Of a stretch of DNA of 64,000 bases, positions 330 through 36,679 are shown piece after piece. The stretch covers positions 81,778,001-81,842,000 of the forward strand of contig NC_135661.1 of assembly GCF_964188315.1 (NCBI RefSeq), written 5' to 3'. Position 1 is the first letter of the stretch. The number at the start of each line of letters is the position of its first letter. A model generated the notes under the pieces. The model was not told the DNA's origin and did not search any database. It saw only the letters and a program-made list of their open reading frames with translations. This DNA comes from Podarcis muralis (taxonomy: Eukaryota). The position numbers and the translations under genes are program-made.

Positions 330-377
330 TTATCTCTTTATCTCTTCGTAGACGGAAGGGCTTCTGGGCTGCAAGGT
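330..377 (-). CDS. Gene A exon 7 (cyt3) TLQPRSPSVYEEIKR*
   Basis: Acceptor TTTTCTCTTTAG|; completes the ITAM; TAA at 332-330. Confidence 0.85.
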   Translation of the reverse strand, partial: TLQPRSPSVYEEIKR

Positions 378-14600: not shown

Positions 14601-16539
14601 CTCTAACCATGACACCGTTTCGTAGTGGTTAAGAGCGGTGGACTCGTAATCTGGTGAACCGGGTTCGATTCCCCGCTCCTCCACATGCAGCTGCTGGGTG
14701 ACCTTGGGCTAGTCACACTTATTTGAAGTCTCTCAGCCCCACTCACCTCACAGAGTGTTTGTTGTGGGGGAGGAAGGGAAAGGAGAATGTTAGCTGCTTT
14801 GAGTCTCCTTAAAGGGAGTGAAAGGCGGGATATCAAATCCAAACTCTTCTTACACAGGCACACATGCTAGGCCCCCAACAGCTTACAGCCTAAAGGAGGT
14901 GACTCATTTAAATGTCAGTGCACTATGCCAATCATTCGGGGTTCCTTTTCCAGTCAGCAGAGTCACCCAGAAAGTCTTCTCAGTTCAGCTCATGTGTTGG
15001 TGAATTCCCAAGTGGGAATAAACACCTCACCCATTTCACTTCAGCTTAAATTATTTATTGCAGAATTAAAATTGCAACTTATACAACGATTGGTCTAAGG
15101 AAAATAAAGTAAAACTATATACAGTGAATCATTCCTCCTCTCTGTTCTTCACTAGGGTGTGTGAGTTGGGACCATTGGTGTAGTAGGAGATTAGCTGTCC
15201 AACTTAACAATGCTTATTCTTGCTAGTTAGCATGGGAAGGGGTTAAGACCACAGAGCTGTATTGCTGATAGGCATAGCATAGAGATGTACATGGGAGAGA
15301 GGGTCTGTGTGATTTCATTTCCCCACCTCTCTATCCCTCTTCCTCCAACCAGCAACGAGGGCTCCGCTTGCTCCAGCTCGTACACATGTCTGAGGCTGTT
15401 TTTACTGTAAATATAAGTATTTTACCTGCATAGTTTGTTTACTGCTGCTGTTGCAGAGAACCAATGCATGACTATAGGTAAGTAAATCATATTTTAAACT
15501 TACTTCCCAGTCTGTTGCCTGATTCTTTGTCAAGAAAGGTAAGAAAGGGGGACACAACTTACGTTGTAGCTGGGCTTTATCCAAAGAAGGCTTCACAATT
15601 CTTATGCTTTAATTTTCTGCTAAGGATGGGATCTAAAACTCTGTTCAGCTTGTGCAAGTGAGTGCCTGGAGGCAAGGTAAAGATAAAGGGACCCCTGAGT
15701 ATTAGGTCCAGTCACGGATGACTCTGGGGTTGCGCCGTTCATCTCGCTTTATTGGCCGAGGGATCCAGCGTACAACTTCTGGGTCATGTGACCAGCATGA
15801 CGCAGCCACTTTTGGCGAACCAGAGCAGCGCACGGAAACTCCGTTTACCTTCCTGCCGGAGCGGTACCTATTTATTTGCACTTTGATGTGCTTTTGAACT
15901 GCTAGGTTGGCAGGAGCAGGGACCGAGCAACGGGAGCTCACCCCGTTGCGGGGATTCGAACTGCTATCCTTCTGATTGGCAAGCCCTAGGCTCTGTGGTT
16001 TAACCCACAGCGCCACCCTCGTCCCTGCCTGGAGGTATAAATTGCAATTCATATATCCTCTCCTAACTAGTAAAACTCATCCCACAGTTGAAAGCACCAT
16101 GTTGAGAGCACCCTGCAGTCGACGGCCAGCTTTGGTTTTACTCACGGAGAAAGACGTAAGTCAGTGTTCCCACTAGCACCAATATCACAGCCAGGGACCC
16201 GATAACAGTCCCAGCGAGGGCTCCAGCAGAACCAGAAGAGGAAGAAGAAGAATCAGCTGAAGAATCTGAAGAGCAAAGGACTTTTTTTCATGATTTTGCA
16301 TTAAGGGTTGACCATAATCTAGCCTCTCATCTCTCCCTCTAAAAGCACTAAAGGAAGGAAATTTAATATTTTAGAATTTTCCAGCTTTGGGGGCAGAGAG
16401 GCAGCAGCATGTAATGTCCAGAAATGGATGCAGCTCTTCCTGGCTCACATAAGATTGGCTCGAATATAAGCCAAGGCGTTGCCCTCCAAAAGGTGAGAAT
16501 AGCTCTTCCTCAAACTCAGTGCCCAGTCTAGTGATTTTC

Positions 16540-16618
<79 letters not shown>

Positions 16619-19600
16619 CTCTGAATGTTTTTAGTAAAGATTTTCTTGGTTTATGAAAGAACATGCGTTCTCTCTTTTTTCAACATACACCCTACATATT
16701 ACCACCCAACCCCCTCTCCCCACCTCCTTCTTCCCCAGTCTAGCGATATTCTTTGATCTTTCCAGCTCCCCCAAGCTCTTATCCCACACTCAGATATGTG
16801 GGCCGCATAACAAGCTATAGGCCCTTTGAGCATTGAAAACAGCTGTCCCAGACGTGCCAACATTTCTGTGATGAAACACCATAATCTACCTCCACACAAA
16901 AAGTGATAGGGAGTTAGAAACCACTAGCATGGAGAGCAGAGTCAGGAGGAAAGGTGTTCCTGGTTTATTAGTGGATTACTCACATGCTATAGTTATCTTA
17001 CTGGGGTTGCTTGTAGCATTACTGACAGGGTTGACTGCCTGACACGTATAGTTCCCTTCGTCCTCTTTGGCGATGCCCGTTATCATGAGGGTTCGGTTCT
17101 GCTCAGAAATCCCAGTCTTAGGTGGGACAGGATTACCATCCTTGAACCAAAGGATGGAGACGTCAAAGTGGTCAGAGGTGTTACAGTGTAAGGTGACAGT
17201 TGCGTTCTCTGACACTAGGGATTCTGTCGGCTGCAGGACTGGGTTGGAGAGGACTTCTGCACATGAAACAGAAAGACAGTCATCATTTGTGGGTCCTCAT
17301 GGTCACTGAATCTGGTTATGGTCTCTTTAAGAGAAGCCATCAAAGAAAACCACTTTGAGCCAGTGACATGTGGTGTTGTTATTGTTTAGTTGTTTTGTCG
17401 TGTCTGACTCTTCGTGACCCCATGGACCAGAGCACGCCAGGCACGCCTGTCTTCCACTGCCTCCCGCAGTTTGGTCAAACTCATGCTGGTAGCTTCGAGA
17501 ACACTGTCCAACCATCTCGTCCTCTGTCGTCCCCTTCTCCTTGTGCCCTCCATCTTTCCCAACATCAGGGTCTTTTCCAAGGAGTCTTCTCTTCTCATGA
17601 GGTGGCCAAAGTATTGGAGCCTCAGCTTCAGAATCTGTCCTTCCAGTGAGCACTCAGGGCTGTTTTCCTTCAGAATGGATAGGTTTGATCTTCTTGCAGT
17701 CCATGGGACTCTCAAGAGTCTCCTCCAACACCATATGTTGGTGCATATTAATTGGTTTAAAAATGCTTTTAAATGAATATAATTCCCCCTCCCCCCCCAA
17801 AAAACCCCTCAAACATTTCCCCATTGAAAAGCTAAAAAGGCAGTTGCAAGACTAGCATATTCTGATATAGTTTTCTGGTGAAAGAATGAATAATTTTGTA
17901 GGGCCTCATTCTTGGGGCAGAGGAATTGTGTTTAGGACAAATTCACGAGCCCCCCCCCCCCACCAAGGAGGAAGGCACAGAATTCTCCACCTCAGAGCTC
18001 AGCAGAGGAGATAGATTTGGGTGCATAAGAAGTAAGAATGACTGGAGAGCAAGTTAACATACCTGAAACGGTGATGTTTGTAGCCCCTGTGTTGGTAACC
18101 CCAGGACTTCCTGGTTTAAATGAATAGGTTCCAGAGTCATCTGGCTTTAAATCTGTGATGTAAAGGGAGCAATCTGGCTTCACAGTTTCCCTGCCAGTGT
18201 GGGCAGGTCCCTCGGTCTGACCACTAGGAGACAGGAAATACGTAATAATAATGTTTCTTTCTTCAGCTGCCCCTCGGTACCATTTGCAGTTACTAAGCTT
18301 CCTCAGATCAAGACCTTCTGGTGTTAAGGTGACACTCTCTCCTTCTTTCAGCACTTCTGGAACAACTCTGATACTTATTCCAGTTGTCTCCTGGGCTCGA
18401 GTCAACAGGAAGCAGGAACTCAGGACGGAGGCTGCAGTGTGGAGAAGAAAACGAAAGACATGTTCTGCTAAAGAAGAAAAAAAGGCATTTCCTGGAGCCA
18501 TCTAACCTCTGCTGAAATGTCACGGCACACTCTAAATATCCCAGTTTGTAACAGTGATTCCCCCCAAGACCTGTCCTGCAAACACCAAGTGTAGCCCTTA
18601 CTTTATTGAGCAAGCAAGAAGGCAGTTCTTTTCCTGGCAGCTCAGCCTCAGCCTTCTTCCGGGGCAGACATGAAGAAAGGGGAAGCGCTCTTGCATTTCC
18701 CCTTCCAGGACCCTCCCATGTTTCTAGCTAAGCAAACATTAACATGAAGGGGTCCAGTGAAGGAGGTCTGGGCATCTGTCTGTGTTTACCTCCTTCAGGG
18801 ACTCAGGATGATTCCTTTCTTTTCTTTCTTTGCTTTATAATTTTTCATTTTTAACAAATGAACATAATAATCTGATTTATAAATCCTTTATGTACTTTCA
18901 CCTTACCACAAATACACATGCCAGCCAAATATATTATCATGACATTCCAAGTCTTTAATATGCGGATTCTTCAGTGACAAACATTCCTTCAACCAGCACA
19001 GACAGGAAGCTTCATAATATAATCTCATATCCGACAGGGAGAAACCTCTTCTCTCTTTCTCATCTATCAATATTTTATATTTTACTCTTGGTTTTTTCCC
19101 TTGCCAGATATCTTTTTGCCATTTATTTCAATAATTTCAATCTGTCTTGCCGATCACCGGTATTGATTGAAACAAAAATAACATTCATTTTAATAAATGA
19201 TTCCTTTCTTCACACAAAGTGCTCACTGGGCATTAAGAATCCTTCTACCATTTTTTTTTATTTCCCCCAGGGATCCAGCCTGCCCCTTAAGTACTACCTC
19301 TCTACCTTCCTCCAGAGCTGCTTGTCTAGAAGGCTCTGAGGCATTGTCAAAGTCATCATGTAACCATACCCTCCAACATTTCTCCAATGAATATGGGGAC
19401 ATCCTAAGGAAAAGCAGGATATTCCAGGCTCAAATCAGAAACTGGCTTCTGTAAATTGGAGACTGTATCTGGAAAACAGGGACACCTGGAGGGTCTGTAT
19501 GTAACTCCATCTGCAGCCTTTCAGAACTCTTACCAGAAACCCCTGTGGAAATGGGGGCCTGATTCTGCGTCCAAGTAGGTAAGAAACAGAGGGTGAAGTG

Positions 19601-20564
19601 GTGCAGCCTTAGTGGGACTTGCCAATTTTGCATTTCAATGCAAGTTTAAGTACATATTTAAAATGCTTCTTCTTGCAAATTAACACAATGGTCTAGTTTG
19701 AATTCCTGAGAAGGACACCACAACAACATTTGGAGGAGCATGAAATCTGGCAGTGAGTGAGGTGTAGACCTCTGCTTTAGTCTGAGAGGTGCAGATCTAT
19801 ATTAGAACTAAAAGACCAAATTCCTCCAGCATCCTCATCCTACCCCCAAGCTCAGTTGCATATAACTCCACCTGCTTCCTTCCAGAGCTCTTACCAGCAA
19901 CCCCTTTGGAAATGGGGTCCGGAGTCTGCATCCTAGTAAGTAGGAAACCAAGGGTGTAACAGGGTGGTCCCTAGCATATAAATACATGTTTTAAAAGTTA
20001 TTTTCATTCAAAACAACACCTTCCTCTAATTTGCATTCTTGAGAACTGCACCACAACATTTGGAGAAGTATGAAATCGGGTGCAGAGTTAGGTTTCGACA
20101 TCTGCATTAGTGGGAGAGATACTGTTGTTTAGTCGTTTAGTCGTGCCCGACTCTTCGTTACCCCATGGACCAGAGCATGCCAGGCACTCCTGTCTTCCAC
20201 TGCCTCCCGCAGTTTGGTCAAACTCATGCTGGTAGCTTCGAGAACACTGTGCAACCATCTCATCCTCTGTAGTCCCCTTCTCTTTGTGCCCTCCATCTTT
20301 CCCAAGATCAAGGTCTTTTCCAGGGAGTCTTCTCTTCTCTTAAGGGGATGGCCAAAGTATTGGACCCTCAGTTTCACGATCTGTTCTTCCAGTGAGCACT
20401 CAGGCTGGGAGACATACAGATCTGTGCTAAAAGACCAAATTCCTCCAGCATCCTCAACTCCCCCCAAGTAAGTCCTCCCCATTGCAGGGTGCTGACCTCT
20501 CACCTGCTAAGGGCAGCATCTTCCAGGAGACATTCCAGTCATGGGATCTGTGTGGCCTGTCCAT
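11564..20564 (-). CDS. Gene B: tandem paralog of gene A, CEACAM-like ITAM receptor, 7 exons, 331 aa
   Basis: Exons 20504-20564, 18063-18431, 16984-17256, 16146-16265, 14196-14278, 12992-13033, 11564-11611; all splice sites and the frame intact (996 nt). Confidence 0.88.
11971..12164. mobile_element. hAT-type MITE, only in duplicate copy 2
   Basis: TIR CATAGCTGTCAAC/GTTGACAGCTATG; 8-bp TSD CTCTACAA; empty site in copy 1 (~1075). Confidence 0.88.
12992..13033 (-). CDS. Gene B exon 6 (cyt2) VHPENSSSAVNTYE
   Basis: 42 nt, phase 0-0. Confidence 0.85.
14196..14278 (-). CDS. Gene B exon 5 (cyt1, IYENV)
   Basis: 83 nt, near-identical to gene A exon 5. Confidence 0.87.
15673..16026 (-). mobile_element. 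Sauria SINE
   Basis: Orthologous to 4300-4658 in the duplicate. Confidence 0.88.
16146..16265 (-). CDS. Gene B exon 4 (stalk + TM)
   Basis: 120 nt; YSSADSSSSSSGSAGALAGTVIGSLAVILVLVGTLTYVFL. Confidence 0.9.
16984..17256 (-). CDS. Gene B exon 3 (IgC)
   Basis: 273 nt; EVLSNPVLQ...CQAVNPVSNATSNPSKITIA. Confidence 0.93.
17375..17730 (-). mobile_element. Bov-B LINE 3' fragment
   Basis: Same RT C-terminal peptide, ORF 17386-17715. Confidence 0.9.
18063..18431 (-). CDS. Gene B exon 2 (IgV N domain)
   Basis: 369 nt, one codon shorter than gene A; same splice sites. Confidence 0.93.
20122..20405 (-). mobile_element. Bov-B LINE 3' fragment
   Basis: Duplicate of 8778-9060. Confidence 0.88.
20504..20564 (-). 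CDS. Gene B exon 1 (leader) MDRPHRSHDWNVSWKMLPLA
   Basis: 61 nt; donor GCAG|GTGAGA. Confidence 0.85.
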
Positions 20565-22763: not shown

Positions 22764-23010
22764 TCTGTGGTATAGTGGTTAAGAGCGATAGTCTCATAAT
22801 CTGATGAACTGGGTTCGCGTCTCTGCTCCTCCACATGCAGCTGCTGGGTGACCTTGGCTAGTCACACTTCTCTGAAGTCTCTCAGCCCCACTCACCTCAC
22901 AGAGTGTTTGTTGTGGGGGAGGAAGGGAAAAGGAGAATGTTAGCCGCTTTGAGATTCCTTAAGGGGAGTGAAAGGCGGGATATCAAATCCAAACTCTTTT
23001 CTTCTTCTTC
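22764..23010 (+). mobile_element. tRNA-derived SINE (Squam2-like)
   Basis: Same family as 3260-3500; inserted into an L1 fragment. Confidence 0.75.
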
Positions 23011-23118
23011 TCTTCTTCATTGCAAGTGTTTTTAAAATCCTGCTAATATTTTCAATTGTTTACATTGGTGGGCTCCTCTGTCACCATGTTACATCTTCTC
23101 TACGCAGACTTTGTCTCT

Positions 23119-23130
23119 TCACTGCGGGGT
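23119..23130 (-). CDS. Gene C putative terminal exon TPQ* (decayed homolog of A/B exon 7)
   Basis: TTTTCTCTCCAG|ACCCCGCAGTGA...GTCTGCGTAGAG aligns to A/B TTTTCTCTTTAG|ACCTTGCAGCCC...GTCTACGAAGAG. Confidence 0.55.
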   Translation of the reverse strand, partial: TPQ

Positions 23131-24584
23131 CTGGAGAGAAAACGGGGGTTCATCAGGTTGGAAACTTCAAAGTCAACCCCGTTTTGGTGTTGCTTTTATT
23201 TGCTTTCCTGGGCAGCACCAGAGAACAGTGATGGCATGGGCTGCTCCCCCCCCCCCCTTAGAAGCAGAATGCACTTTTGAAAGAGGAGCTAATAAGTGCT
23301 CTCTCGTTGGTTGGTTTATACTGGCTGGAGAATCCAGGCATCCTTTACATGGAGTTTAGGACTCGCATCCAGTGCAACACTGAGTAACTTGTTCCGTTAG
23401 TGCATGGATTTATGCTTGCTCAATGGAACTTTCTCCTGTACTCCCATGTGCCCGCCAAATCTGTTCTGGGCTTTCCCTGACCCTCCAGAGCAGATTCGAG
23501 GGAAGGAGAAGGGAAGTCCATTGTGCAAGTGTAAATCCTTCTGCTAATGGAACAAGTACCAGGGATGCCATCCTAGGGGCTGTACCAAATACGTCTACTT
23601 ACAGAAAGGCCCATTTGAATGGATTAATCTAAGTGAGTCACGCCCTATATTTTCAGTGGGTGTTTTTTCGTATCTGACGTCCAGGCGTCACACACAATGT
23701 TGTGACATCGCACGTGATCTCTGGACGCAACGCAAGCCCCCACAATCTCTTTCTTGAGTCGGCGTGCCTGCCCTCAGGTCACTTCTCTCCCACCTCTGCT
23801 CCCGCGGAAAAACTGAAAGAGAGAAAGCGTGTACACACGAGTTTCCCTTTTCCAAGGGATCTCAGTAAAAGCTGAATCCAAATAGAATGAATCTGAACCT
23901 TGGAAAGGTCATAGAGCTGAAGGAGGAAGTGGGAAAGAGCGTCTCTCTTCCAGCTTTCATTCTTCAGCCTTGTTTGCTTTTCAAGGGAAAAATGGGTAAC
24001 CATTCTCACCACCTCAGGGAAGACCTGAGGGTTGCCATTGCCTTTTGGTGACCCTCAGTTTAACTCATTTAATCTAGCCTATAAATTACCCAGGGCAGGT
24101 TCCTTTAAATTCTCTTCAATTAGAACACCAGGCTTAATGACAGCACTGAAAGGAAAGACTGCCTCGTTGCAGGGGTGCCTTACAAAGCTCATCTAAGGCC
24201 TTACCTGTCTGGAATGGCAACATTTTCATAGGCAGGTGGGTCACATGTTGGCGGTTCAGGTGCCTCAACAGTGGAAGTATTTTCAGTCCGACATCGGCCA
24301 CCTGAGGGAGAGAGGCTACTGGCAACCAAATCTTAACATTCAAGCTCTCCATTAGTTGTTACTTTTTAAGAATATACGATATGTGTTGCTTAGAGTACTG
24401 GACCAGGAGCTGGGAGACGAGGGTCCAAATCCTCACTTGGCCACCTGAAGTCCACCGAGTGACCTCGGGCCGGTCGCTATCTCTGAGCTTAACCTCCCTC
24501 ACAAAAGTTGTTGTGAGGATGAAATGCAACGGGGAAGAACCAACATACGCCACCTTGAGCTCATTGCAGGAAAAGTGGGGCAGA

Positions 24585-24639
<55 letters not shown>

Positions 24640-27600
24640 TGCTGCCCATCTGACTGGGTAGCTCCAGCCATTCTGGGTGGTTGAAAAATAAAATAAAATA
24701 GTAAAAGCACAATAGAACACCACACACTAAAAACTTCCCTGAACAGGGCTGCCTTCGAAAATGCAATAAACAAATAGACATCTGCAAAGGAGTTCTCCAG
24801 TACAAAAGGAATGCAGACAATACCTTCAGACCAAAAGGAATTTTGGGTCACACGCCACATTAGATGCCTCAATGAGGCCTTTTCAGCATTTCAGTCATAC
24901 CTCAGGTTACGTCCTCTTCATGTTACGTTCTTTCAGGTTACATCCCGTGGTGACCCGGAAGTACCGGAAAGGGTTACTTCCGGGTTTCACCACTTGTGCA
25001 TGTGCAGAAGCGCAAAATGATGTCACGCGCATGTGCAGAAGTGGTGAATAGCAACCCGTGCGTGCGCAGACGCGCTGCTGTGGGTTGCACTCTTTTAATG
25101 TTGCGAACGGGCCTCCGGAACGGATCCTGTTCGCAACCAGAGGTACCACAGTATTCCTCTGCAATAGACTATGTTAGACTGTTTCACACTATACTATTAG
25201 ACTATACCTTGTGAAGTCGAGTATACCTGAAACATTAATTTTGGCTGAATCAGTCTCCATTTTAAGTCTAACGAAATGTTCCATACAGATTCTAAAGCAA
25301 TTTCCCATTATTTGGGCTGTATGGCACATTCTAACTCTCTATTCTGTTCCTATGTTCCCACACTGCTTATTCCCCGCCCCCCACTGCCCCCAATACGGAT
25401 TTGTAAGCAACAGTCCCAGCTTTAACTTTCTAGCAATTAGTTCTAGCTTGCAGCTTTCACTGTCATACTCACGGCATCTGTAGAGCGAGACCCCCAGCCC
25501 AATCAACGAGAGGATCAAAGTCAAGACCCCAGCAGTGATCTTAGCAATGTCCTCTGCCTTCCAAGCAGCTTGACTTGAACGAGAACCTGGAATCGAAAAA
25601 GGTCCTTTTGAGGGCTGCAGTGGCCAGATTAATGGTCGTGGTTACCTTTAGAACTCAATTAACCAGTATTCTAAAACCGCTGTGCCGACTGCCGGTTTGT
25701 ATCCAGCACCAATTCAAGGTGCTCATGCTAGTGTTTAAACCCCATACAACATACCGTATTTTTTGCTCTATAAGACTCACTTTTCCCCTCCTAAAAAGTA
25801 AGGGGAAATGTGTGTGTGTCTTATGGAGCGAATGCAGGCTGCGCAGCTATCCCAGATGCCAGAACAGCAAGAGGGATTGCTGCTTTCACTGTGCAGTGAT
25901 CCCTCTTGCTGTTCTGGCTTCTGAGATTCAGAATATTTTTTTTCTTGTTTTCCTCCTCCAAAAACTAGGTGCGTCTTGTGGTCTGGTGCGTCTTATAGAG
26001 CGAAAAATACTGTAGGTCCCAAATATCTGGAAAGCTGCCTCCTTCCCTACAGACCACCCTTAGTGTTACGATTGGCAGAGGGATCTTTCTTTGTAGTTCC
26101 TCTACCCTCAGTTGTCGAGGGAGTCACCCAGGACTCGGCATTCTCTGTGGCAGCCCTCAAATTGTAGAATATCTTCCCCACAGATATATTCCTAGCACCT
26201 TCTCTATACAGCTTTTGGTGAATGCTGAAGGCGCACCTTTTTACATGGCGTGTATGTGTTTTAGGACCAACCCTATCGCTGAAGGTGGAAAATTGCAGCT
26301 GCCAGGCAGGTTTGCCCTCAGCACCTCTCATTTTGCAAAATAGGTAATCACCAACTGTGGGTTAAACCACAGAGCCTAGGACTTGCCGATCAGAAGGTCG
26401 GCGGTTCGAATCCCCGTGGCGGGGTGCGCTCCCGTTGCTCGGTCCCTGCTCCTGCCAACCTAGCAGTTCGAAAGCATGTCAAGGTGCAAGTAGATAAATA
26501 GGTACCACTCCAGTGGGAAGGTAAACGGCGTTTCCGTGCGCTGCTCTGGTTCGCCAGAAGCAGCTTAGTCATGCTGGCCACATCACCCGGAAGCCGTAGG
26601 CCGGCTCCCTCGGCCAATAAAGCGAGATGAGCACCGCAACGCCAGAGTTGGCCGTGACTGGACCTAATGGTCAGGGGTCCCTTTACCCTTTACCTTTAAC
26701 AGTCTCAAACAACCACTAATCAACATTTAGTAATCCCTAACATGTTTGAAAGCACATCAAAGTACAAGTAGATAAATAGGTACTGCTCCGGCGGGAAGGT
26801 AAACGACGTTTCTGTGCACTGCTCTGGTTCTCCAGAAGCGGCTTAGTCATGCTGGCCACATGACCCGGAAGAACTGTCTGCAAAGGTCGGCTCCCTCGGC
26901 CAGGAAAGCGAGATGAGCGCCGCAACCACAGCGTCGTTCGCGACTGGACTTTTACTGTCAGGGGTCCTTTACCTTTTTTTTTTAACATCACTTGGATGCA
27001 CACAACCCACCCACCCCAAGAGAGGAGAATAGGAATTAGCAGCATGGTCAGGCTAGGATTACTCACTGATTATGCTGGGATTGCTTATGGCGTTGCTAAT
27101 GGGGTTTCTGGCCTCGCAGGTATAGGTCCCCAATTCATCTTCGGAGGCTCCAGCTAGAGTGAGGGTTCTGTTCTGCTCAGAGAGTCCGGCTTGAGCTTGG
27201 AGGAGCTCCCCATCCTTGAACCAGAAGACTTTGACATTGGAGCTGTCCGAGGTGCTACAGCGCAAGGTGACGCTCCTGTTCTCTGCCAGCACCGATTCTA
27301 CAGGCAACAGAACTGGTCTGGAGAGGATTTCTGTACAGAGAATAGAAAGAGGCTTATCCTTGGTGAGTCCTTGTGTGTTCCAGCTCTTGCATTCTCCATC
27401 GCATATGACCATTAAGGAACCCCACCTTTAGACCATTTCCCAAGACAGGAGAGGCTCACTTGGGGAGGGGGTGAGGTTGACTAGACTCTCAGGTGAAACA
27501 CATGGGATGCTTTACTTAATGCCAGGGACTGGGGCAGAGGAAAAAATGGTGGAGACTGCCTCTCCAGCCTGACCCTTCCAGAGAAGAAGAAGAAGACAGT

Positions 27601-30198
27601 TCAGAATTACAACAACTCAGCGGCAGATGAGGGGGAANNNNNNNNNNNNNNNNNNNNNNNNNNNNNNNNNNNNNNNNNNNNNNNNNNNNNNNNNNNNNNN
27701 NNNNNNNNNNNNNNNNNNNNNNNNNNNNNNNNNNNNNNNNNNNNNNNNNNNNNNNNNNNNNNNNNNNNNTCCCGCTTTATCACTACCCGAAGGAGTCTCA
27801 AAGCGGCTAACAATCTCCTTTCCCTTCCTCCCCCACAACAAACACTCTGTGAGGTGAGTGGGGCTGAGAGACTTCAGAGAAGTGTGACTGGCCCAAGGTC
27901 ACCCAGCAGCTGCATGTGGAGGAGCGGGGAAGCGAACCCGGTTCACCAGATTACGAGTCTACCGCTCTTAACCACTACACCACACTGGCACCAGGGGAGA
28001 GACAGCTGACAGACTCAGTGTCTTTAGAAAGCATCCCAGACCCCTCCTTTCCCAGAACCCGGCGGGCATTGAAAGTAGGAGAGCAGAGAGCTCAGAGGCA
28101 GAAGGCAAAGCTCAGCCCACCATAGTGATGATGCATAATGGGAGAGACAGAGGGGGTAGTGTTTCAATCAGAGCAACACCATTACTCCAAGAGGCTGCAT
28201 TTCTAAGCCTCTCTCTGTGAATATTGAATAAAAAAACATTGGTAAGAACTTTCCTCGTCTTATCCACTCCTGGCAACCTACCGTGTGGGGTTGGCTCCTC
28301 TGAAGCCTGACATTTATTTATTTATTTATTTAATTTTTTTAATTTTCAATGCATAATCATAACAAAAATTACAAACATTGAATCCAAAATAATACTATAC
28401 AAACAAAAAAGAACGGAACATACAAAAAAAAAAAAAAACCAAGAAAAAAGAAAAAAAGGAAACAAAACGAAACGAAACTAAACAAAAACAAAAAAGCACA
28501 CATCTACAGAAAAAAACCATATCATTACGTACTTATACACATATTGACTTCCTTCCTTTGTTCTAAGACCTCAGAAATTTTACTCTTACTATATTGTTGT
28601 GTCTGGTTAGATTACATCCATCTTTGTACTTTTTTTTTTTAACACCATTCCCCCCCCCTTTAACCCTTTAACCCTGTAAAGCATCATTCATTACATACCA
28701 ATATACTAACTCCAGAACAATGTTTTTTCATATACTCTTTAGCACAACCCCATTCTTTTAATAATTTCTGGTCCGATTGTCCCCTTATGAATGCTGTGAG
28801 TCTTGCCAGATTTATGTATTCACAAAATTTAATTTGCCAATCTTTCATTGATGTAATTTTTCTCCCTTTCCAGTTTTTTGCTATAAGCATCCTGGCAGCT
28901 GTTGTTGCATAAAGGAATACTTTCCTTTGATTGTCGGGGATATCATTTGTAATTAAACCTAAAAGGAATGCCTCCGGTTTTTTAATGACGCAGAAGGAGA
29001 GACAACTCAGGGCACATTTAAACCAGGCATGAAGGAACCTGTGGCTCCCCAGGTGATATTATTGTTATTGTTAATTATAAAATTTGGTTAGTTCCTTTAT
29101 CTTGCCCAGGGCAAAACAAAGTGACTTCCAAGCAAACAACCCCACATACCATATTGCCCCAAATATAAGCTGCACTTTCCCCCCCAAATTCTGATCGTGC
29201 AGCTGATCGTGTCTGAAAGTGCAGCTTAGATTCACGACCTCACGCCACTGGCAAAGCGGCGTGGCTTTCCCCACACCAGGAAGCAGCCCAGGAGCACGGG
29301 GCAACAGTGCCCGTCCCGTCTGCCTCCCCCAAGCTGCCAGATTTTAAAGGTGTGTCTTATATGTGGGTGCAGCTTATATACAGGCCAATATATTAAAACC
29401 AAGCAGGGAAAGACGGGGAAGAAATACATTAAAAATATTACACCTATATCTAAAAGGCTACATACAGATGGTTGAAGGCCAAATACCTGTTTATAGAAGA
29501 ATGTCCCCCGCCCCTTTCCCGGTGCCTAAAGATATATCAGGATGATGCCAGATGTTGTTCAACTCCCACTTCCTTCATTCCTGAACATTGGCAATGCTGG
29601 CTGAGGGCTGATCTGGAGGCCCACAGATTTCCTCATCCCTGACATAAAGGCATTAGAAGGGCTGGAGAACGTCATACCTGAAACCTCCATGTCCACATGG
29701 CCTGTGGTGGAAAGCATCCCACTTTCGTCCAGTGTTACTGTATAAATCCCAGAGTCCTCTGGTACTAAATTCCTGATGTGAAGGGAGCAGCCAGGACCCA
29801 TTGTCTCTCGCCTAGTGTAGGCCGCTCCCGGCACATAAAACGGAGGTGTATGGGTGAAGATCAGTTCCTCCGATTCAGCTGTCACCCCACGGTACCAGTG
29901 GCACCTTTTAAAATCTTCTAAGACAACTCCTGGTGTAAGGGTGACGCTCTGCCCTGCTACTGGATTCAGTGGTTCCACAGCGATGGAGATTTTGGTGGCG
30001 ATGGTGTCCTGGCCTTGAGTTAACAGGAAGCAAGAACTCACGATGGAGGCTGCAGTGTGGGATATAAGAGAGATTTTTCTCATCAAGCCAGAGGTGGAAA
30101 TCTTTTCCAGCTTGAGGGACACATACCTTTGTACTGTGGACTAGTGTCTACACAACTACTGCACAACCCTCTATCCTATGACAAGAGAGAAAGACACA

Positions 30199-34661: not shown

Positions 34662-36679
34662 TGGGATAATCAAAATAAATAGATATAGCTAGTGAGGGAT
34701 CAAAAGGAAATATAAGAAGAGTCCCTTGCAGGATCAGGCCAAAGGCTCATCTAATTAGCATCCTGTTCTCACAGTGCCAACTAGATGTCTTTGGCAAAAC
34801 TGGCAAGAAGGAACTGACTCTCCCCTCCTGCCATAGGAGCGAACTCCTAGGGGCCAGGGGGCTTCGGCCTCTGCAATAAAATATATGAGGGGGCTGCTCA
34901 CCCCCCAAGTTGGTGGGCATTGTCATTCAAATATTGTGTGTGCACTGCATCATGTGATCGGTTATGCAGGACAGGGCATGCCTAGCCCCCCCCCCATATT
35001 TTATTCAAGTTGGCACCCCTGCCATCTCAAGCAACTGGTCTTCAAACGTATTAGAGTGGTACCTCAGGTTACATACACTTCAGGTTACATACGCTTCAGG
35101 TCACAGACGCCGCTAACCCAGAAATAGTACTTCAGGTTAAGAACTTTGCTTCAGGATAAGAACAGAAATCGTGCTCCGGTGGCGCGGCGGCAGCAGGAGG
35201 CCCCATTAGCTAAAGTGGTGCTTCAGGGTAAGAACAGTTTCAGGTTAAGAACGGACCTCCGGAACGAATTAAGTACTTAACCCGAGGTACCACTGTACTG
35301 CCTCTGATCTTGAAGGCAGAGCACAGCCATTATGGCTAGTAGCCCTTGATAGTCTTGCGATCCATGAATTTGCCCTCTTGTGGCAGTGAGTTCCATAGTT
35401 TAAGTACGTGTGCAAGAGGACTTTATCTTTGCTGAATCTTCTAACGCTTAGCTCCCTTAGATGCCCATGAATTCTGGTGTCGTGAGAGAGGGAGGAAAAC
35501 ATTTCTCTGCCCACTAGGCTGAATTCTATAAACTTCTATCGTGTCGCCTCCGACTTGCCTTTTCCTTGAGCTAAAGAGGCCCAAACTCTGAAACCTTTCC
35601 TGGCAACAGTGCTGCTCCTCCATCTATACGTAGAAAAGTCTATGTTCCTGACACACCCACTGGGAAAGAAAGGAAAGGAGCCATAAACTCTTTGCGTACA
35701 CAAAATTGCTGCACAATATATAGGGCGCAGAAATTTTTACGATGAGTTTTACTGCTGCCGTTTTCTGATTTTGCGCAAATCTTATCAAAAGTGGGTGGGG
35801 GTCCTCTGTCCCAGAGAGCATCAGAAATAGGAAAAGAACTGGCCGTCGGGGGTGTGTGTGCTAGATTTACGTATAAGCTAAACAAGCTATAGCTTAGGGC
35901 CCCTCTCTCTTGCCCCCCATGTACTTCTTCTTAATTGTATTTCACTATTAATATACTTCTTCTTAATTGTATTCCAGTTCAACAATTACTTTGATAAAAT
36001 ACATACAGTGGTACCTCGGGTTACATACGCTTCAGGTTACAGACTCTACTAACCCAGAAATAGTGCTTCAGGTTAAGAACTTTGCTTCAGGATAAGAACA
36101 GAAATTGGGCTTTGGTGGCGCGGCGGCAGCAGGAGGCCCCATTAGCTAAAGTGGTGCTTCAGGTTAAGAACAGTTTCAGGTTAAGAACAGACCTCTGGAA
36201 CGAATTAAGTACTTAACCCGAGGTACCACTGTATTTTGTTATGTGCAAATGGCTTTAGATACCTGTTGGGTCCATAAATTACCATATAGCATATATTCAA
36301 CACAAAAAAACAGCGACCATTTGTTGTTGGCAAAGGACAGCTGGACATATAAAGGGCCCCATTACCTTCAGTAGCTGAGGGCCTCATCAAACCTAAATCC
36401 GGCCCTGGTGGTGGTGGGGAAATATTTGTATTAATAACAGCAGTAGCTACAGCAACAGCAGGATGAATCGATTTGGGGAATGAACCCCAAAAGTAGACAA
36501 GTACAGTGCGGAAACCCACTTACACACCACCAAAGACTATCAAGGGTAACCCATTCCACAACCCACTTTGGGTCTTCCTCCCCCCCTCCCCTCTCAGGGT
36601 CCCAATCCCTCTCACCTGCTAGAAGTGCTGCCTCCCAGCTCCTTTTCCGCCCAAGGAAAAGCCCCCGGTGGCGCCCCAT
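23119..36679 (-). CDS. Gene C: CEACAM-like receptor L-N-A-TM(Lys)-short tail, ITAM lost, ~313 aa
   Basis: Exons 36616-36679, 29678-30049, 27067-27330, 25473-25586, 24205-24301, then tentatively 23794-23812 and 23119-23130; frame open throughout. The last two exons are less certain. Confidence 0.78.
23794..23812 (-). CDS. Gene C putative exon 6 (19 nt, SFSAGAE)
   Basis: Strong acceptor TCTCTCTTTCAG|, weaker donor GAG|GTGGGA; converts phase 2 back to phase 0. Confidence 0.45.
24205..24301 (-). CDS. Gene C exon 5 (cyt1) RGRCRTENTSTVEAPEPPTCDPPAYENVAIPD
   Basis: Acceptor CTCTCCCTCAG|, donor CAG|GTAAGG; homologous to A/B exon 5 (YENV) but ends in phase 2. Confidence 0.82.
25473..25586 (-). CDS. 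Gene C exon 4 (TM) SSRSSQAAWKAEDIAKITAGVLTLILSLIGLGVSLYRC
   Basis: Acceptor GATTCCAG|, donor C|GTGAGT; 114 nt, phase 1-1. Confidence 0.87.
25754..26012. mobile_element. TcMar/pogo-like MITE
   Basis: TA|CCGTATTTTTTGCTCTATAAGAC...GTCTTATAGAGCGAAAAATACTG|TA. Confidence 0.8.
26357..26990 (+). mobile_element. Sauria SINE (5'-trimmed) followed by a second 3' fragment
   Basis: Two consecutive matches to the SINE body. Confidence 0.85.
27067..27330 (-). CDS. Gene C exon 3 (IgC)
   Basis: Acceptor CTGTACAG|AA, donor A|GTGAGT; 264 nt; VTLRC...WFKDG...LSEQNRTLTL...YTCEARNPIS. Confidence 0.92.
27638..27769. other. Assembly gap (N)
   Basis: 132 N. Confidence 1.
27770..27985 (-). mobile_element. tRNA-derived SINE (Squam2-like), abutting an N gap
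   Basis: Reverse match to the same family. Confidence 0.75.
28300..28990 (-). mobile_element. L1-clade LINE 3' fragment
   Basis: KPEAFLLGL...LIAKNWK; A-rich tail. Confidence 0.72.
29678..30049 (-). CDS. Gene C exon 2 (IgV N domain)
   Basis: Acceptor CACACTGCAG|CC, donor CAG|GTATG; 372 nt; ASIVSSCFLLTQG...CHWYRG...GCSLHIRNLVPEDSGIYT. Confidence 0.92.
30277..30710 (+). mobile_element. L2-clade LINE RT C-terminal fragment
   Basis: YQLHLIRRLRPYL...VHALVISCLDYCNAL...QNAAA. Confidence 0.82.
30760..31410 (-). mobile_element. L2-clade LINE 3' fragment
   Basis: VTSRLDYCNSLYVGLPLRLTQKLQRVQNATARLL; (TTA)n tail. Confidence 0.82.
32690..33730 (+). mobile_element. CR1 LINE 3' end, interrupted by a solo LTR
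   Basis: KGLETKPYEERLRELGMLS; tail GGTTGGACTAGATGACC...CTATGATTCTAT. Confidence 0.85.
32995..33605 (+). mobile_element. Solo LTR (611 bp) with internal ORF
   Basis: TG...CA termini; 5-bp TSD CCTTG at 32990-32994 and 33606-33610. Confidence 0.85.
33882..33932. repeat. (TA)n microsatellite
   Basis: Direct reading; other SSRs at ~24587 (AAT), ~30199 (ATT), ~34608 (TG), ~41952 (TC/AC), ~50300 (AAT), ~55597 (GT). Confidence 0.95.
34044..34326 (-). mobile_element. Sauria SINE, internally deleted variant
   Basis: Head and ACCTTT tail present. Confidence 0.82.
36006..36231. mobile_element. TcMar-like MITE (family copies at 35054-35295, 55995-56220; truncated at ~32084 and ~58694)
   Basis: TA|CAGTGGTACCTCGGGTT...AACCCGAGGTACCACTG|TA. 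Confidence 0.88.
36616..36679 (-). CDS. Gene C exon 1 (leader) MGRHRGLFLGRKRSWEAALLA
   Basis: 64 nt; donor GCAG|GTGAGA identical to genes A and B. Confidence 0.8.

Follow-up and report, generated by a model that had tools for sequence, protein, structure and literature searches.

An expressed CEACAM gene of the lizard Podarcis muralis with a decayed ITAM tail and a lysine at the predicted edge of its transmembrane segment

A 64,000-nucleotide stretch of the Podarcis muralis genome (assembly GCF_964188315.1, contig NC_135661.1, positions 81,778,001 to 81,842,000; hereafter the window) holds a cluster of CEACAM genes, and one of these, on the minus strand and here called gene C, encodes a membrane protein whose ITAM (immunoreceptor tyrosine-based activation motif) has decayed and whose transmembrane (TM) exon carries a lysine on the N-terminal side of a hydrophobic run. 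An original prediction made from the DNA alone had proposed that gene C switched from its own ITAM to signalling through a borrowed adaptor docked on this lysine. We weigh that proposal here against other readings of the locus; positions are those of the window, and all gene features lie on its minus strand. The spliced translation of gene C is identical to two NCBI proteins, XP_077788363.1 (isoform X1) and XP_077788364.1 (isoform X2), which carry the name 'cell adhesion molecule CEACAM16-like'. Its IgV-like N domain and IgC2 domain are encoded by separate exons inside the cluster, as is typical of the CEACAM family; the precomputed Pfam domains of the protein are V-set, I-set, and Ig_2, and its best relatives are lizard CEACAM proteins. 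Besides gene C, the window contains five more CEACAM-type N exons.

Searching with the protein N-termini by tblastn located the leader exon of isoform X1 (MGRHRGLFLGRKRSWEAALLA) at 36617..36679 and the alternative leader of isoform X2 at 36387-36367, both at 100% identity. The N exon (29678..30049), encoding the IgV-like domain matched by Pfam V-set, and the IgC2-type exon (27067..27330) follow from the spliced translation, the latter also from an RNA joint. The TM exon (25473..25586), 114 nucleotides (nt) long and ending in phase 1, encodes ..SRSSQAAWKAEDIAKITAGVLTLILSLIGLGVSLYRC (alternatively excerpted as ..AAWKAEDIAKITAGVLTLILSLIGLGVSLYRC)—a juxtamembrane W-K-A-E-D-I-A-K, then a 20-residue hydrophobic run, ITAGVLTLILSLIGLGVSLY, then RC—and the lysine in question, K235, is specified by an AAG codon at 25540..25542. 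As originally predicted, the lysine lies N-terminal of the TM segment. Cytoplasmic exon 5 (24205..24301), placed by the spliced translation and by RNA joints at both ends, encodes RGRCRTENTSTVEAPEPPTCDPPAYENVAIPD, and the coding part of the terminal exon as used (23100..23130) adds (R)PRSEETKSA before a stop at 23102-23100.

Downstream of gene C, and on its strand, are two further genes of the cluster, A and B, which keep the standard reptile tail and served as comparators. In each, an 83-nt exon 5 in phase 0 (gene A 2854-2772; gene B 14278-14196) carries QIYENV, a 42-nt exon 6 (gene A 1969-1928; gene B 13033-12992) ends ..NTYE in phase 0, and a terminal exon (gene A 330..377; gene B 11611-11564) encodes TLQPRSPSVYEEIKR and a stop; the ITAM, YETL-x7-YEEI, is built from exon 6 and the terminal exon. 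Their TM exons lie at 4898-4779 (gene A) and 16146..16265 (gene B), and the TM segment of gene B (..GSAGALAGTVIGSLAVILVLVGTLTYVFL) is uncharged and carries no basic residue either at its N-terminal edge or inward of it. Gene C has no motif of the form YxxL/I-x6-8-YxxL/I across the last two of three cytoplasmic exons. Its exon 5 measures 97 nt and ends in phase 2 rather than 0, as had been noted from the DNA, and it does retain in this first cytoplasmic exon the upstream single-tyrosine motif (YxxPhi or YxN) of ITAM CEACAMs, as a YENV at 24230-24219 that the original prediction had missed and that is conserved in Podarcis lilfordi and Zootoca vivipara. Reptile ITAM CEACAMs typically have an endocytic motif with a single tyrosine, which lies 17-21 residues upstream of the ITAM (PMC13278318), and marsupial ITAM CEACAMs have a GRB2-like YxN motif in the cytoplasmic domain (PMC2832619).

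The terminal exon of the ancestral tail survives in gene C as a relic. Read in the ancestral frame, it gives TPQ, a stop, RDKVCVEKM, and a second stop, against TLQPRSPSVYEEIKR in genes A and B; the lesions are a TGA at 23121-23119 and a Tyr-to-Cys change at 23106-23104. Its local alignment to the gene A terminal exon plus acceptor region, mapping to 23176-23122, scores 21 against 10.2 +/- 1.1 for 300 shuffles (z = 9.4), so the mutated A/B-type exon that had been recognised at 23130 (TPQ and stop, VCVE) is confirmed, with homology well above that of shuffled sequence. For the middle exon, local alignment of A/B exon 6 with its flanks to the gene C intron 24230-23100 reached 9 (shuffle mean 10), and a self-blastn of the gene C TM and tail exons against the window returned only a weak match of exon 5 to genes A and B. 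A 19-nt piece at 23812-23794 had been put forward as a decayed exon 6 ending in AE instead of YE. The piece exists, has AG/GT borders, and would read SFSAGAE, but we rejected it as an exon: its alignment falls below the shuffle mean, and both the RNA contig described below and the NCBI models skip it.

Transcript evidence agrees with the loss of the ITAM. A spliced RNA contig of 1090 nt and depth 123 (run X1, same species label) covers the IgC2 exon, TM exon, exon 5, and relic, and joins 27065 to 25584, 25470 to 24298, and 24205 to 23130, each over a GT..AG intron on the minus strand; intron depth in the same run, about 25, represents unspliced or genomic background. Exon 5 is thereby joined straight to the relic, out of frame, a route with its stop at 23102-23100 that is common to the contig and to NCBI isoforms X1 and X2, and the resulting product ends ..YENVAIPDRPRSEETKSA (in the shorter excerpt, ..PAYENVAIPDRPRSEETKSA). 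All three splice routes that had been constructed from the DNA do lack an ITAM, and it is the third of them, ending ..RPRSEETKSA, that the contig and the NCBI models use. No transcript with an intact ITAM exon was found, the contig ending instead in the out-of-frame relic. The ITAM loss in gene C is confirmed.

We compared the orthologous loci of Zootoca vivipara (L001) and P. lilfordi (L002), in both of which the TM exon, exon 5, and relic are all present with intact splice sites. The relic is nearly identical across these lacertids: P. lilfordi and Zootoca each differ from P. muralis at one position. Because its TGA and its Tyr-to-Cys change are common to all three species, the decay of the ITAM predates the split between Podarcis and Zootoca. 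Exon 5 of Zootoca has one extra base (..YENVAHSRQ), which leaves it in phase 0 like genes A and B, and it would enter the relic in the TPQ-stop frame. The comparison indicates that the phase-2 exon 5 is a Podarcis-specific 1-nt deletion and the source of the RPRSEETKSA end. The annotated proteins of Zootoca (XP_034973416.1; L001:12869-16935) and P. lilfordi (CAI5780990.1; L002:11994-16309) end by read-through past the IgC2 exon; since the TM exon, exon 5, and terminal exon lie intact downstream in both genomes, these 'secreted' gene C models are probably truncated annotations.

The P. muralis reference TM exon shows a peculiarity of its own: five derived substitutions relative to P. lilfordi and Zootoca are clustered within about 21 nt, at 25507-25527. 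The run X1 contig differs from the reference at 8 sites in this exon, at least two of them silent, and at 25507 and 25510 it has the P. lilfordi/Zootoca state. The pattern suggests either two haplotypes or a short conversion tract.

With lesions of this kind in the tail, gene C might simply be decaying, ITAM loss being a first step of pseudogenisation and the transcript and reading frame functionless leftovers. The stop, the Tyr-to-Cys change, and the frameshift in the tail exons would fit such a course, as would the similarity of exon identity (93-95%) to intron identity (92-95%) among lacertids and the lack of reads in two raw RNA runs. The ratio of nonsynonymous to synonymous substitution (dN/dS), estimated by the Nei-Gojobori method across four exons (N, IgC2, TM, and exon 5), is 0.80 between P. 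muralis and Zootoca, not different from 1 (p = 0.44). Within Podarcis, however, and thus after the ITAM had decayed, the exons bear a signature of purifying selection, with a dN/dS of 0.39 between P. muralis and P. lilfordi (Fisher p = 0.004). Further points tell against decay: all splice sites and the frames of the N, IgC2, TM, and 5 exons are intact in three species, TM-exon replacements among lacertids are all conservative of hydrophobic character (I/V, T/I, A/T, V/F, Y/C), the spliced transcript stands at a depth of 123 versus about 25 for introns, and TM segments of this type are retained in Iguania and snakes. Two other arguments were tried and set aside. The open frame is weak as proof of function, the neutral probability of meeting no stop being 0.14 for Zootoca and 0.28 for P. 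lilfordi, values that are not small and are compatible with decay; and retention of the AAG lysine codon in Zootoca and P. lilfordi was rejected as evidence since exon identity equals intron identity. From the substitution pattern we conclude that gene C is, by all appearances, functional at least within Podarcis after loss of the ITAM, and pseudogenisation in progress seems to us an improbable account.

The position of the lysine relative to the membrane was assessed from hydrophobicity, using Wimley-White values. The best 19-residue window, ITAGVLTLILSLIGLGVSL, excludes K235, which falls at position -1; Kyte-Doolittle values select the same 19-residue window and differ in the best windows of 17, 21, and 23 residues. 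Twenty uncharged residues separate K235 from RCR. In a segment of 21-23 residues the lysine would occupy positions 1-3, at a cost of about 1-2.4 kcal/mol on the octanol scale, and the glutamate at -4 and aspartate at -3 relative to it have a spacing that could permit intrahelical salt bridges. K235 is, on this prediction, a boundary residue, and the sequence does not force its placement in the bilayer core. These results do not support adaptor docking on the lysine; the original prediction had itself named a lysine predicted outside the bilayer, with 20 hydrophobic residues after it, as counting against it.

The TM exon of gene C belongs to a lysine-bearing type that shows no similarity at the nucleotide level to those of genes A and B. 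A word-index protein search with gene C residues 212-299 (TM and tail) returned the query alone, and one with the whole protein gave 7 hits; the relatives that share the TM type surfaced solely in a full HMMER scan. We defined a group by an exon that opens W-K-x-x-D-I, has a glycine seven residues on, continues in a hydrophobic run, and ends in phase 1, a description that fits the exons of P. muralis, P. lilfordi, Zootoca, Sceloporus, Liasis, and Python and is supported by tblastn E values of 1e-4 to 9e-6 (in small databases) and, for TM plus tail, a blastp E of 2e-9. In the Sceloporus undulatus homolog (XP_042295839.1), which shares the motif W-K-x-x-D-I-x-K-I-x-A-G with gene C, the same TM-exon type (..SWKSGDIVKIVAG..) continues into 23 hydrophobic residues, and the tail comes from a single last exon of 28 residues without tyrosine. 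The python orthologs, represented by Liasis isoform 1 and Python bivittatus, read ..PWKTKDIVGLFLG.., with glycine at the lysine site; their exon 5 homolog has lost its tyrosine and the ITAM is absent.

Because Sceloporus, with its different tail, carries the same motif, the lysine motif is much older than the lacertid ITAM decay. Among three lineages, lysine without ITAM occurs twice and neither lysine nor ITAM once, and no sampled ortholog pairs this TM type with an intact ITAM, so a co-occurrence of the lysine with ITAM loss is not demonstrable. Between lacertids and Sceloporus, the juxtamembrane motif keeps 9 of 12 residues versus about one quarter in the hydrophobic core, and of 48 TM-bearing relatives, just the gene C group and one other protein have a basic residue at the N-terminal TM edge or within +/-3 positions of it.

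Known adaptor-coupled receptors give rules against which such a lysine can be read. The premise of the original prediction regarding these receptors holds: FcalphaRI, GPVI, and LILRAs have an N-terminal TM arginine in an NxxR motif for FcR-gamma (PMC6557307, PMC1440944), and the NxxR TM segments of FcR-gamma partners combine this arginine with a conserved preceding residue, a DYT motif, and an acidic C-terminal end (PMC6557307). Partners of FcR-gamma with a basic TM residue all use arginine, within the N-terminal segment, at position 3 in FcalphaRI, where an R3K change strongly reduces assembly; type I partners of DAP12 instead have a lysine near position 9, matching Asp9 of DAP12 (PMC1440944). 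Under these rules, which are mammalian and may differ outside mammals, gene C has a lysine with aspartate at -3 (D-I-A-K) in place of arginine with asparagine at -3, its TM segment ends in the basic ..SLYRCRGRCR with no DYT, and its lysine, which takes position -1 relative to the best 19-mer or, in a 23-mer, position 3 at the most, does not lie near the TM centre. It thus has a DAP12-type residue at an FcR-gamma-type position and lacks every sequence feature of both classes, which lowers the adaptor claim.

That gene C, having lost its ITAM, signals through an adaptor dimer (FcR-gamma, DAP12, DAP10, or CD3-zeta) docked on Lys235, as the first adaptor-coupled CEACAM, nevertheless draws on several observations. 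Its own ITAM is truly gone; E-D-I-A-K with its hydrophobic run resembles the E/Q-N-L-I-R of NxxR receptors; in a 23-mer TM segment the lysine would sit at position 3 like Arg3 of FcalphaRI; a basic residue so near the N-terminal TM edge is rare among the relatives; no other part of the TM exon is as well conserved as the lysine motif; and the Sceloporus homolog, with lysine motif and a 28-residue tail devoid of tyrosine, has the classic look of an adaptor-coupled receptor. Set against these are the 20 (Podarcis) to 23 (Sceloporus) uncharged residues that follow the lysine and make its entry into the bilayer unnecessary, the weakening of FcR-gamma assembly by R3K and the need of DAP12 for a lysine near position 9, the aspartate at -3 and the basic rather than acidic end of the TM segment, the greater age of the lysine relative to the ITAM decay, the glycine in the ITAM-less python ortholog, and the retention of YENV. 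We consider adaptor coupling of this kind unlikely. Of the proposed switch, the ITAM loss is real and old; the switch itself is speculation because the lysine is older than that loss, and the lysine moreover lies outside the best hydrophobic window and fits neither adaptor rule. A variant of the idea is that an old squamate CEACAM lineage, comprising lacertid gene C and the CEACAM21-like protein of Sceloporus and marked by a W-K-x-x-D-I-x-K TM exon, signals through an adaptor dimer on the boundary lysine; this too we regard as doubtful.

Gene C shares features with several described systems and differs from each of them in others. Like the reptile ITAM-bearing CEACAM1-related receptors (genes A and B; PMC13278318), it lies in the same cluster, follows the same plan of N, IgC2, and phase 1 TM exons, has a YENV-type motif in its first cytoplasmic exon, and retains a recognisable homolog of the terminal ITAM exon; unlike them, it has no ITAM, no detectable middle cytoplasmic exon, and a terminal exon read out of frame. 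Membrane-anchored decoys derived from CEACAM1 in terrapins likewise have a TM-anchored ectodomain that has lost its tyrosine signalling module (PMC13278318), and were proposed in that work as a new decoy type without signalling domains. They arose, however, by a splice-donor mutation after the TM exon in a CEACAM1 background with immunoreceptor tyrosine-based inhibitory motifs (ITIMs), whereas gene C has a decayed ITAM tail with one YENV left and retains an IgC2 domain. The FcR-gamma-coupled receptors of the leukocyte receptor complex (FcalphaRI, GPVI, LILRA, OSCAR, NCR1, and TARM1) resemble gene C in that the TM segment has a basic residue close to its N-terminal end, preceded at a distance of three positions by a polar one, and the tail itself carries no ITAM; gene C differs in its lysine for arginine and aspartate for asparagine, its lack of DYT, its basic TM end (YRCR), the full-length hydrophobic run after the lysine, and the YENV in its tail, and the TM exons are evolutionarily unrelated. 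With DAP12-coupled type I receptors (activating KIR, TREM) it has in common lysine as the basic residue, and the Sceloporus homolog has in addition their short, tyrosine-less tail, but their lysine sits near the TM centre at about position 9 and that of gene C at -1 to 3. Activating CEACAMs have been described as carrying an ITAM themselves instead of a charged residue in the TM segment (PMC2110893), the reptile CEACAM survey is silent on adaptors and on charged TM residues (PMC13278318), and we found no description in the literature of the ITAM-less state of gene C or of its TM-exon type.

Taken together, these observations would best describe gene C as an expressed, ITAM-less CEACAM that binds ligand and signals weakly at most, or acts in endocytosis, through YENV, its lysine being a boundary residue of an old juxtamembrane motif; we think this reading probable, by a modest measure. 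The product would be a type I membrane protein whose IgV-like N domain and single IgC2 domain are followed by a stalk, one TM helix, and a 44-residue cytoplasmic tail starting RCRGRCR, belonging to a squamate CEACAM1-related family and, to judge from the transcript and the substitutions, expressed and selectively maintained. Its ancestor presumably had the usual reptile ITAM tail of three exons, which then decayed: the middle exon, bearing the first ITAM tyrosine, would have vanished without a findable homolog, the terminal exon would have gained its stop and Tyr-to-Cys change before Podarcis and Zootoca diverged, and a later 1-nt deletion in Podarcis would have shifted exon 5 to phase 2, so that the relic is now read as RPRSEETKSA and a stop. 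The remaining YENV fits both a GRB2-type SH2 motif (YxN) and an endocytic YxxPhi motif, and with it kept, intrinsic signalling may be regarded as not wholly lost. The receptor would then most likely be a low-signalling or endocytic binding or decoy receptor, and its lysine, which belongs to an old juxtamembrane motif on the extracellular side and lies at the outer boundary of the membrane, could pair with the Glu/Asp one turn above or snorkel to the headgroups.

Several points weigh against this picture of a maintained, weakly signalling receptor. Constraint is not shown on the Zootoca branch, where dN/dS is 0.80 (p = 0.44). Gene C exons have zero depth in raw RNA runs X23 and X24, which are uninformative on splicing. 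Phosphorylation of YENV and its binding of GRB2 or AP-2 are predictions from motif rules. Finally, conservation of the juxtamembrane motif suggests some function left unspecified by this picture.

Other observations concern charged TM segments and ITAM exons elsewhere in the family. In a CEACAM of the tortoise Gopherus flavomarginatus, XP_050786870.1 (C-terminal 70 residues), a lysine lies inside the TM core (..GAVLVKAGVYFLC..) at a site that is glycine in relatives, and the modelled tail keeps YENL and a distal YDQL, the proximal ITAM tyrosine being absent; this protein is a candidate for another charged-TM CEACAM. The Zootoca orthologs of genes A and B have a glutamate inside the TM core (..AGTVIESLAVILV..), glycine in Podarcis A/B, with the ITAM intact. 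In Liasis olivaceus, an intact-looking ITAM terminal exon (L004:21451-21495, plus strand), with an acceptor and encoding TLQLREQAIYDVIK and a stop, lies downstream of another CEACAM N exon (19540-19854), at a distance of about 1.6 kb; a TM exon, exon 5, and exon 6 were not found between the two, and according to the reptile CEACAM preprint, snakes have no CEACAM genes that contain an ITAM. Within the window, 22807-23007, 25621-26022, and 26224-27027 are interspersed repeats that reach very high depth in all four runs (summed contig depth as high as about 2e5) and have many loose ends. These high-copy elements in the introns and 3' flank of gene C are unrelated to its expression. A long (ATT)n microsatellite occupies 24575-24648 in the intron that separates the TM exon from exon 5, and reads appear cut there.

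The paired receptors of the CEACAM family are the textbook case of activating receptors with an ITAM of their own rather than one borrowed from an adaptor (PMC2110893). Study of gene C also corrects two annotations, those of the P. lilfordi and Zootoca proteins, whose models stop past the IgC2 exon and are probably truncated. Its lysine-bearing TM-exon type, present in lacertids and an iguanian and, without the lysine, in pythons, offers a cheap bench test of adaptor coupling in CEACAMs; if the W-K-x-x-D-I-x-K lineage did prove to be adaptor-coupled, it would be the first such CEACAM and would explain the repeated decay of its own tyrosine motifs. As a CEACAM that has lost its ITAM and yet is still expressed and under selection, gene C indicates that this family also yields membrane receptors with weak or no intrinsic signalling.

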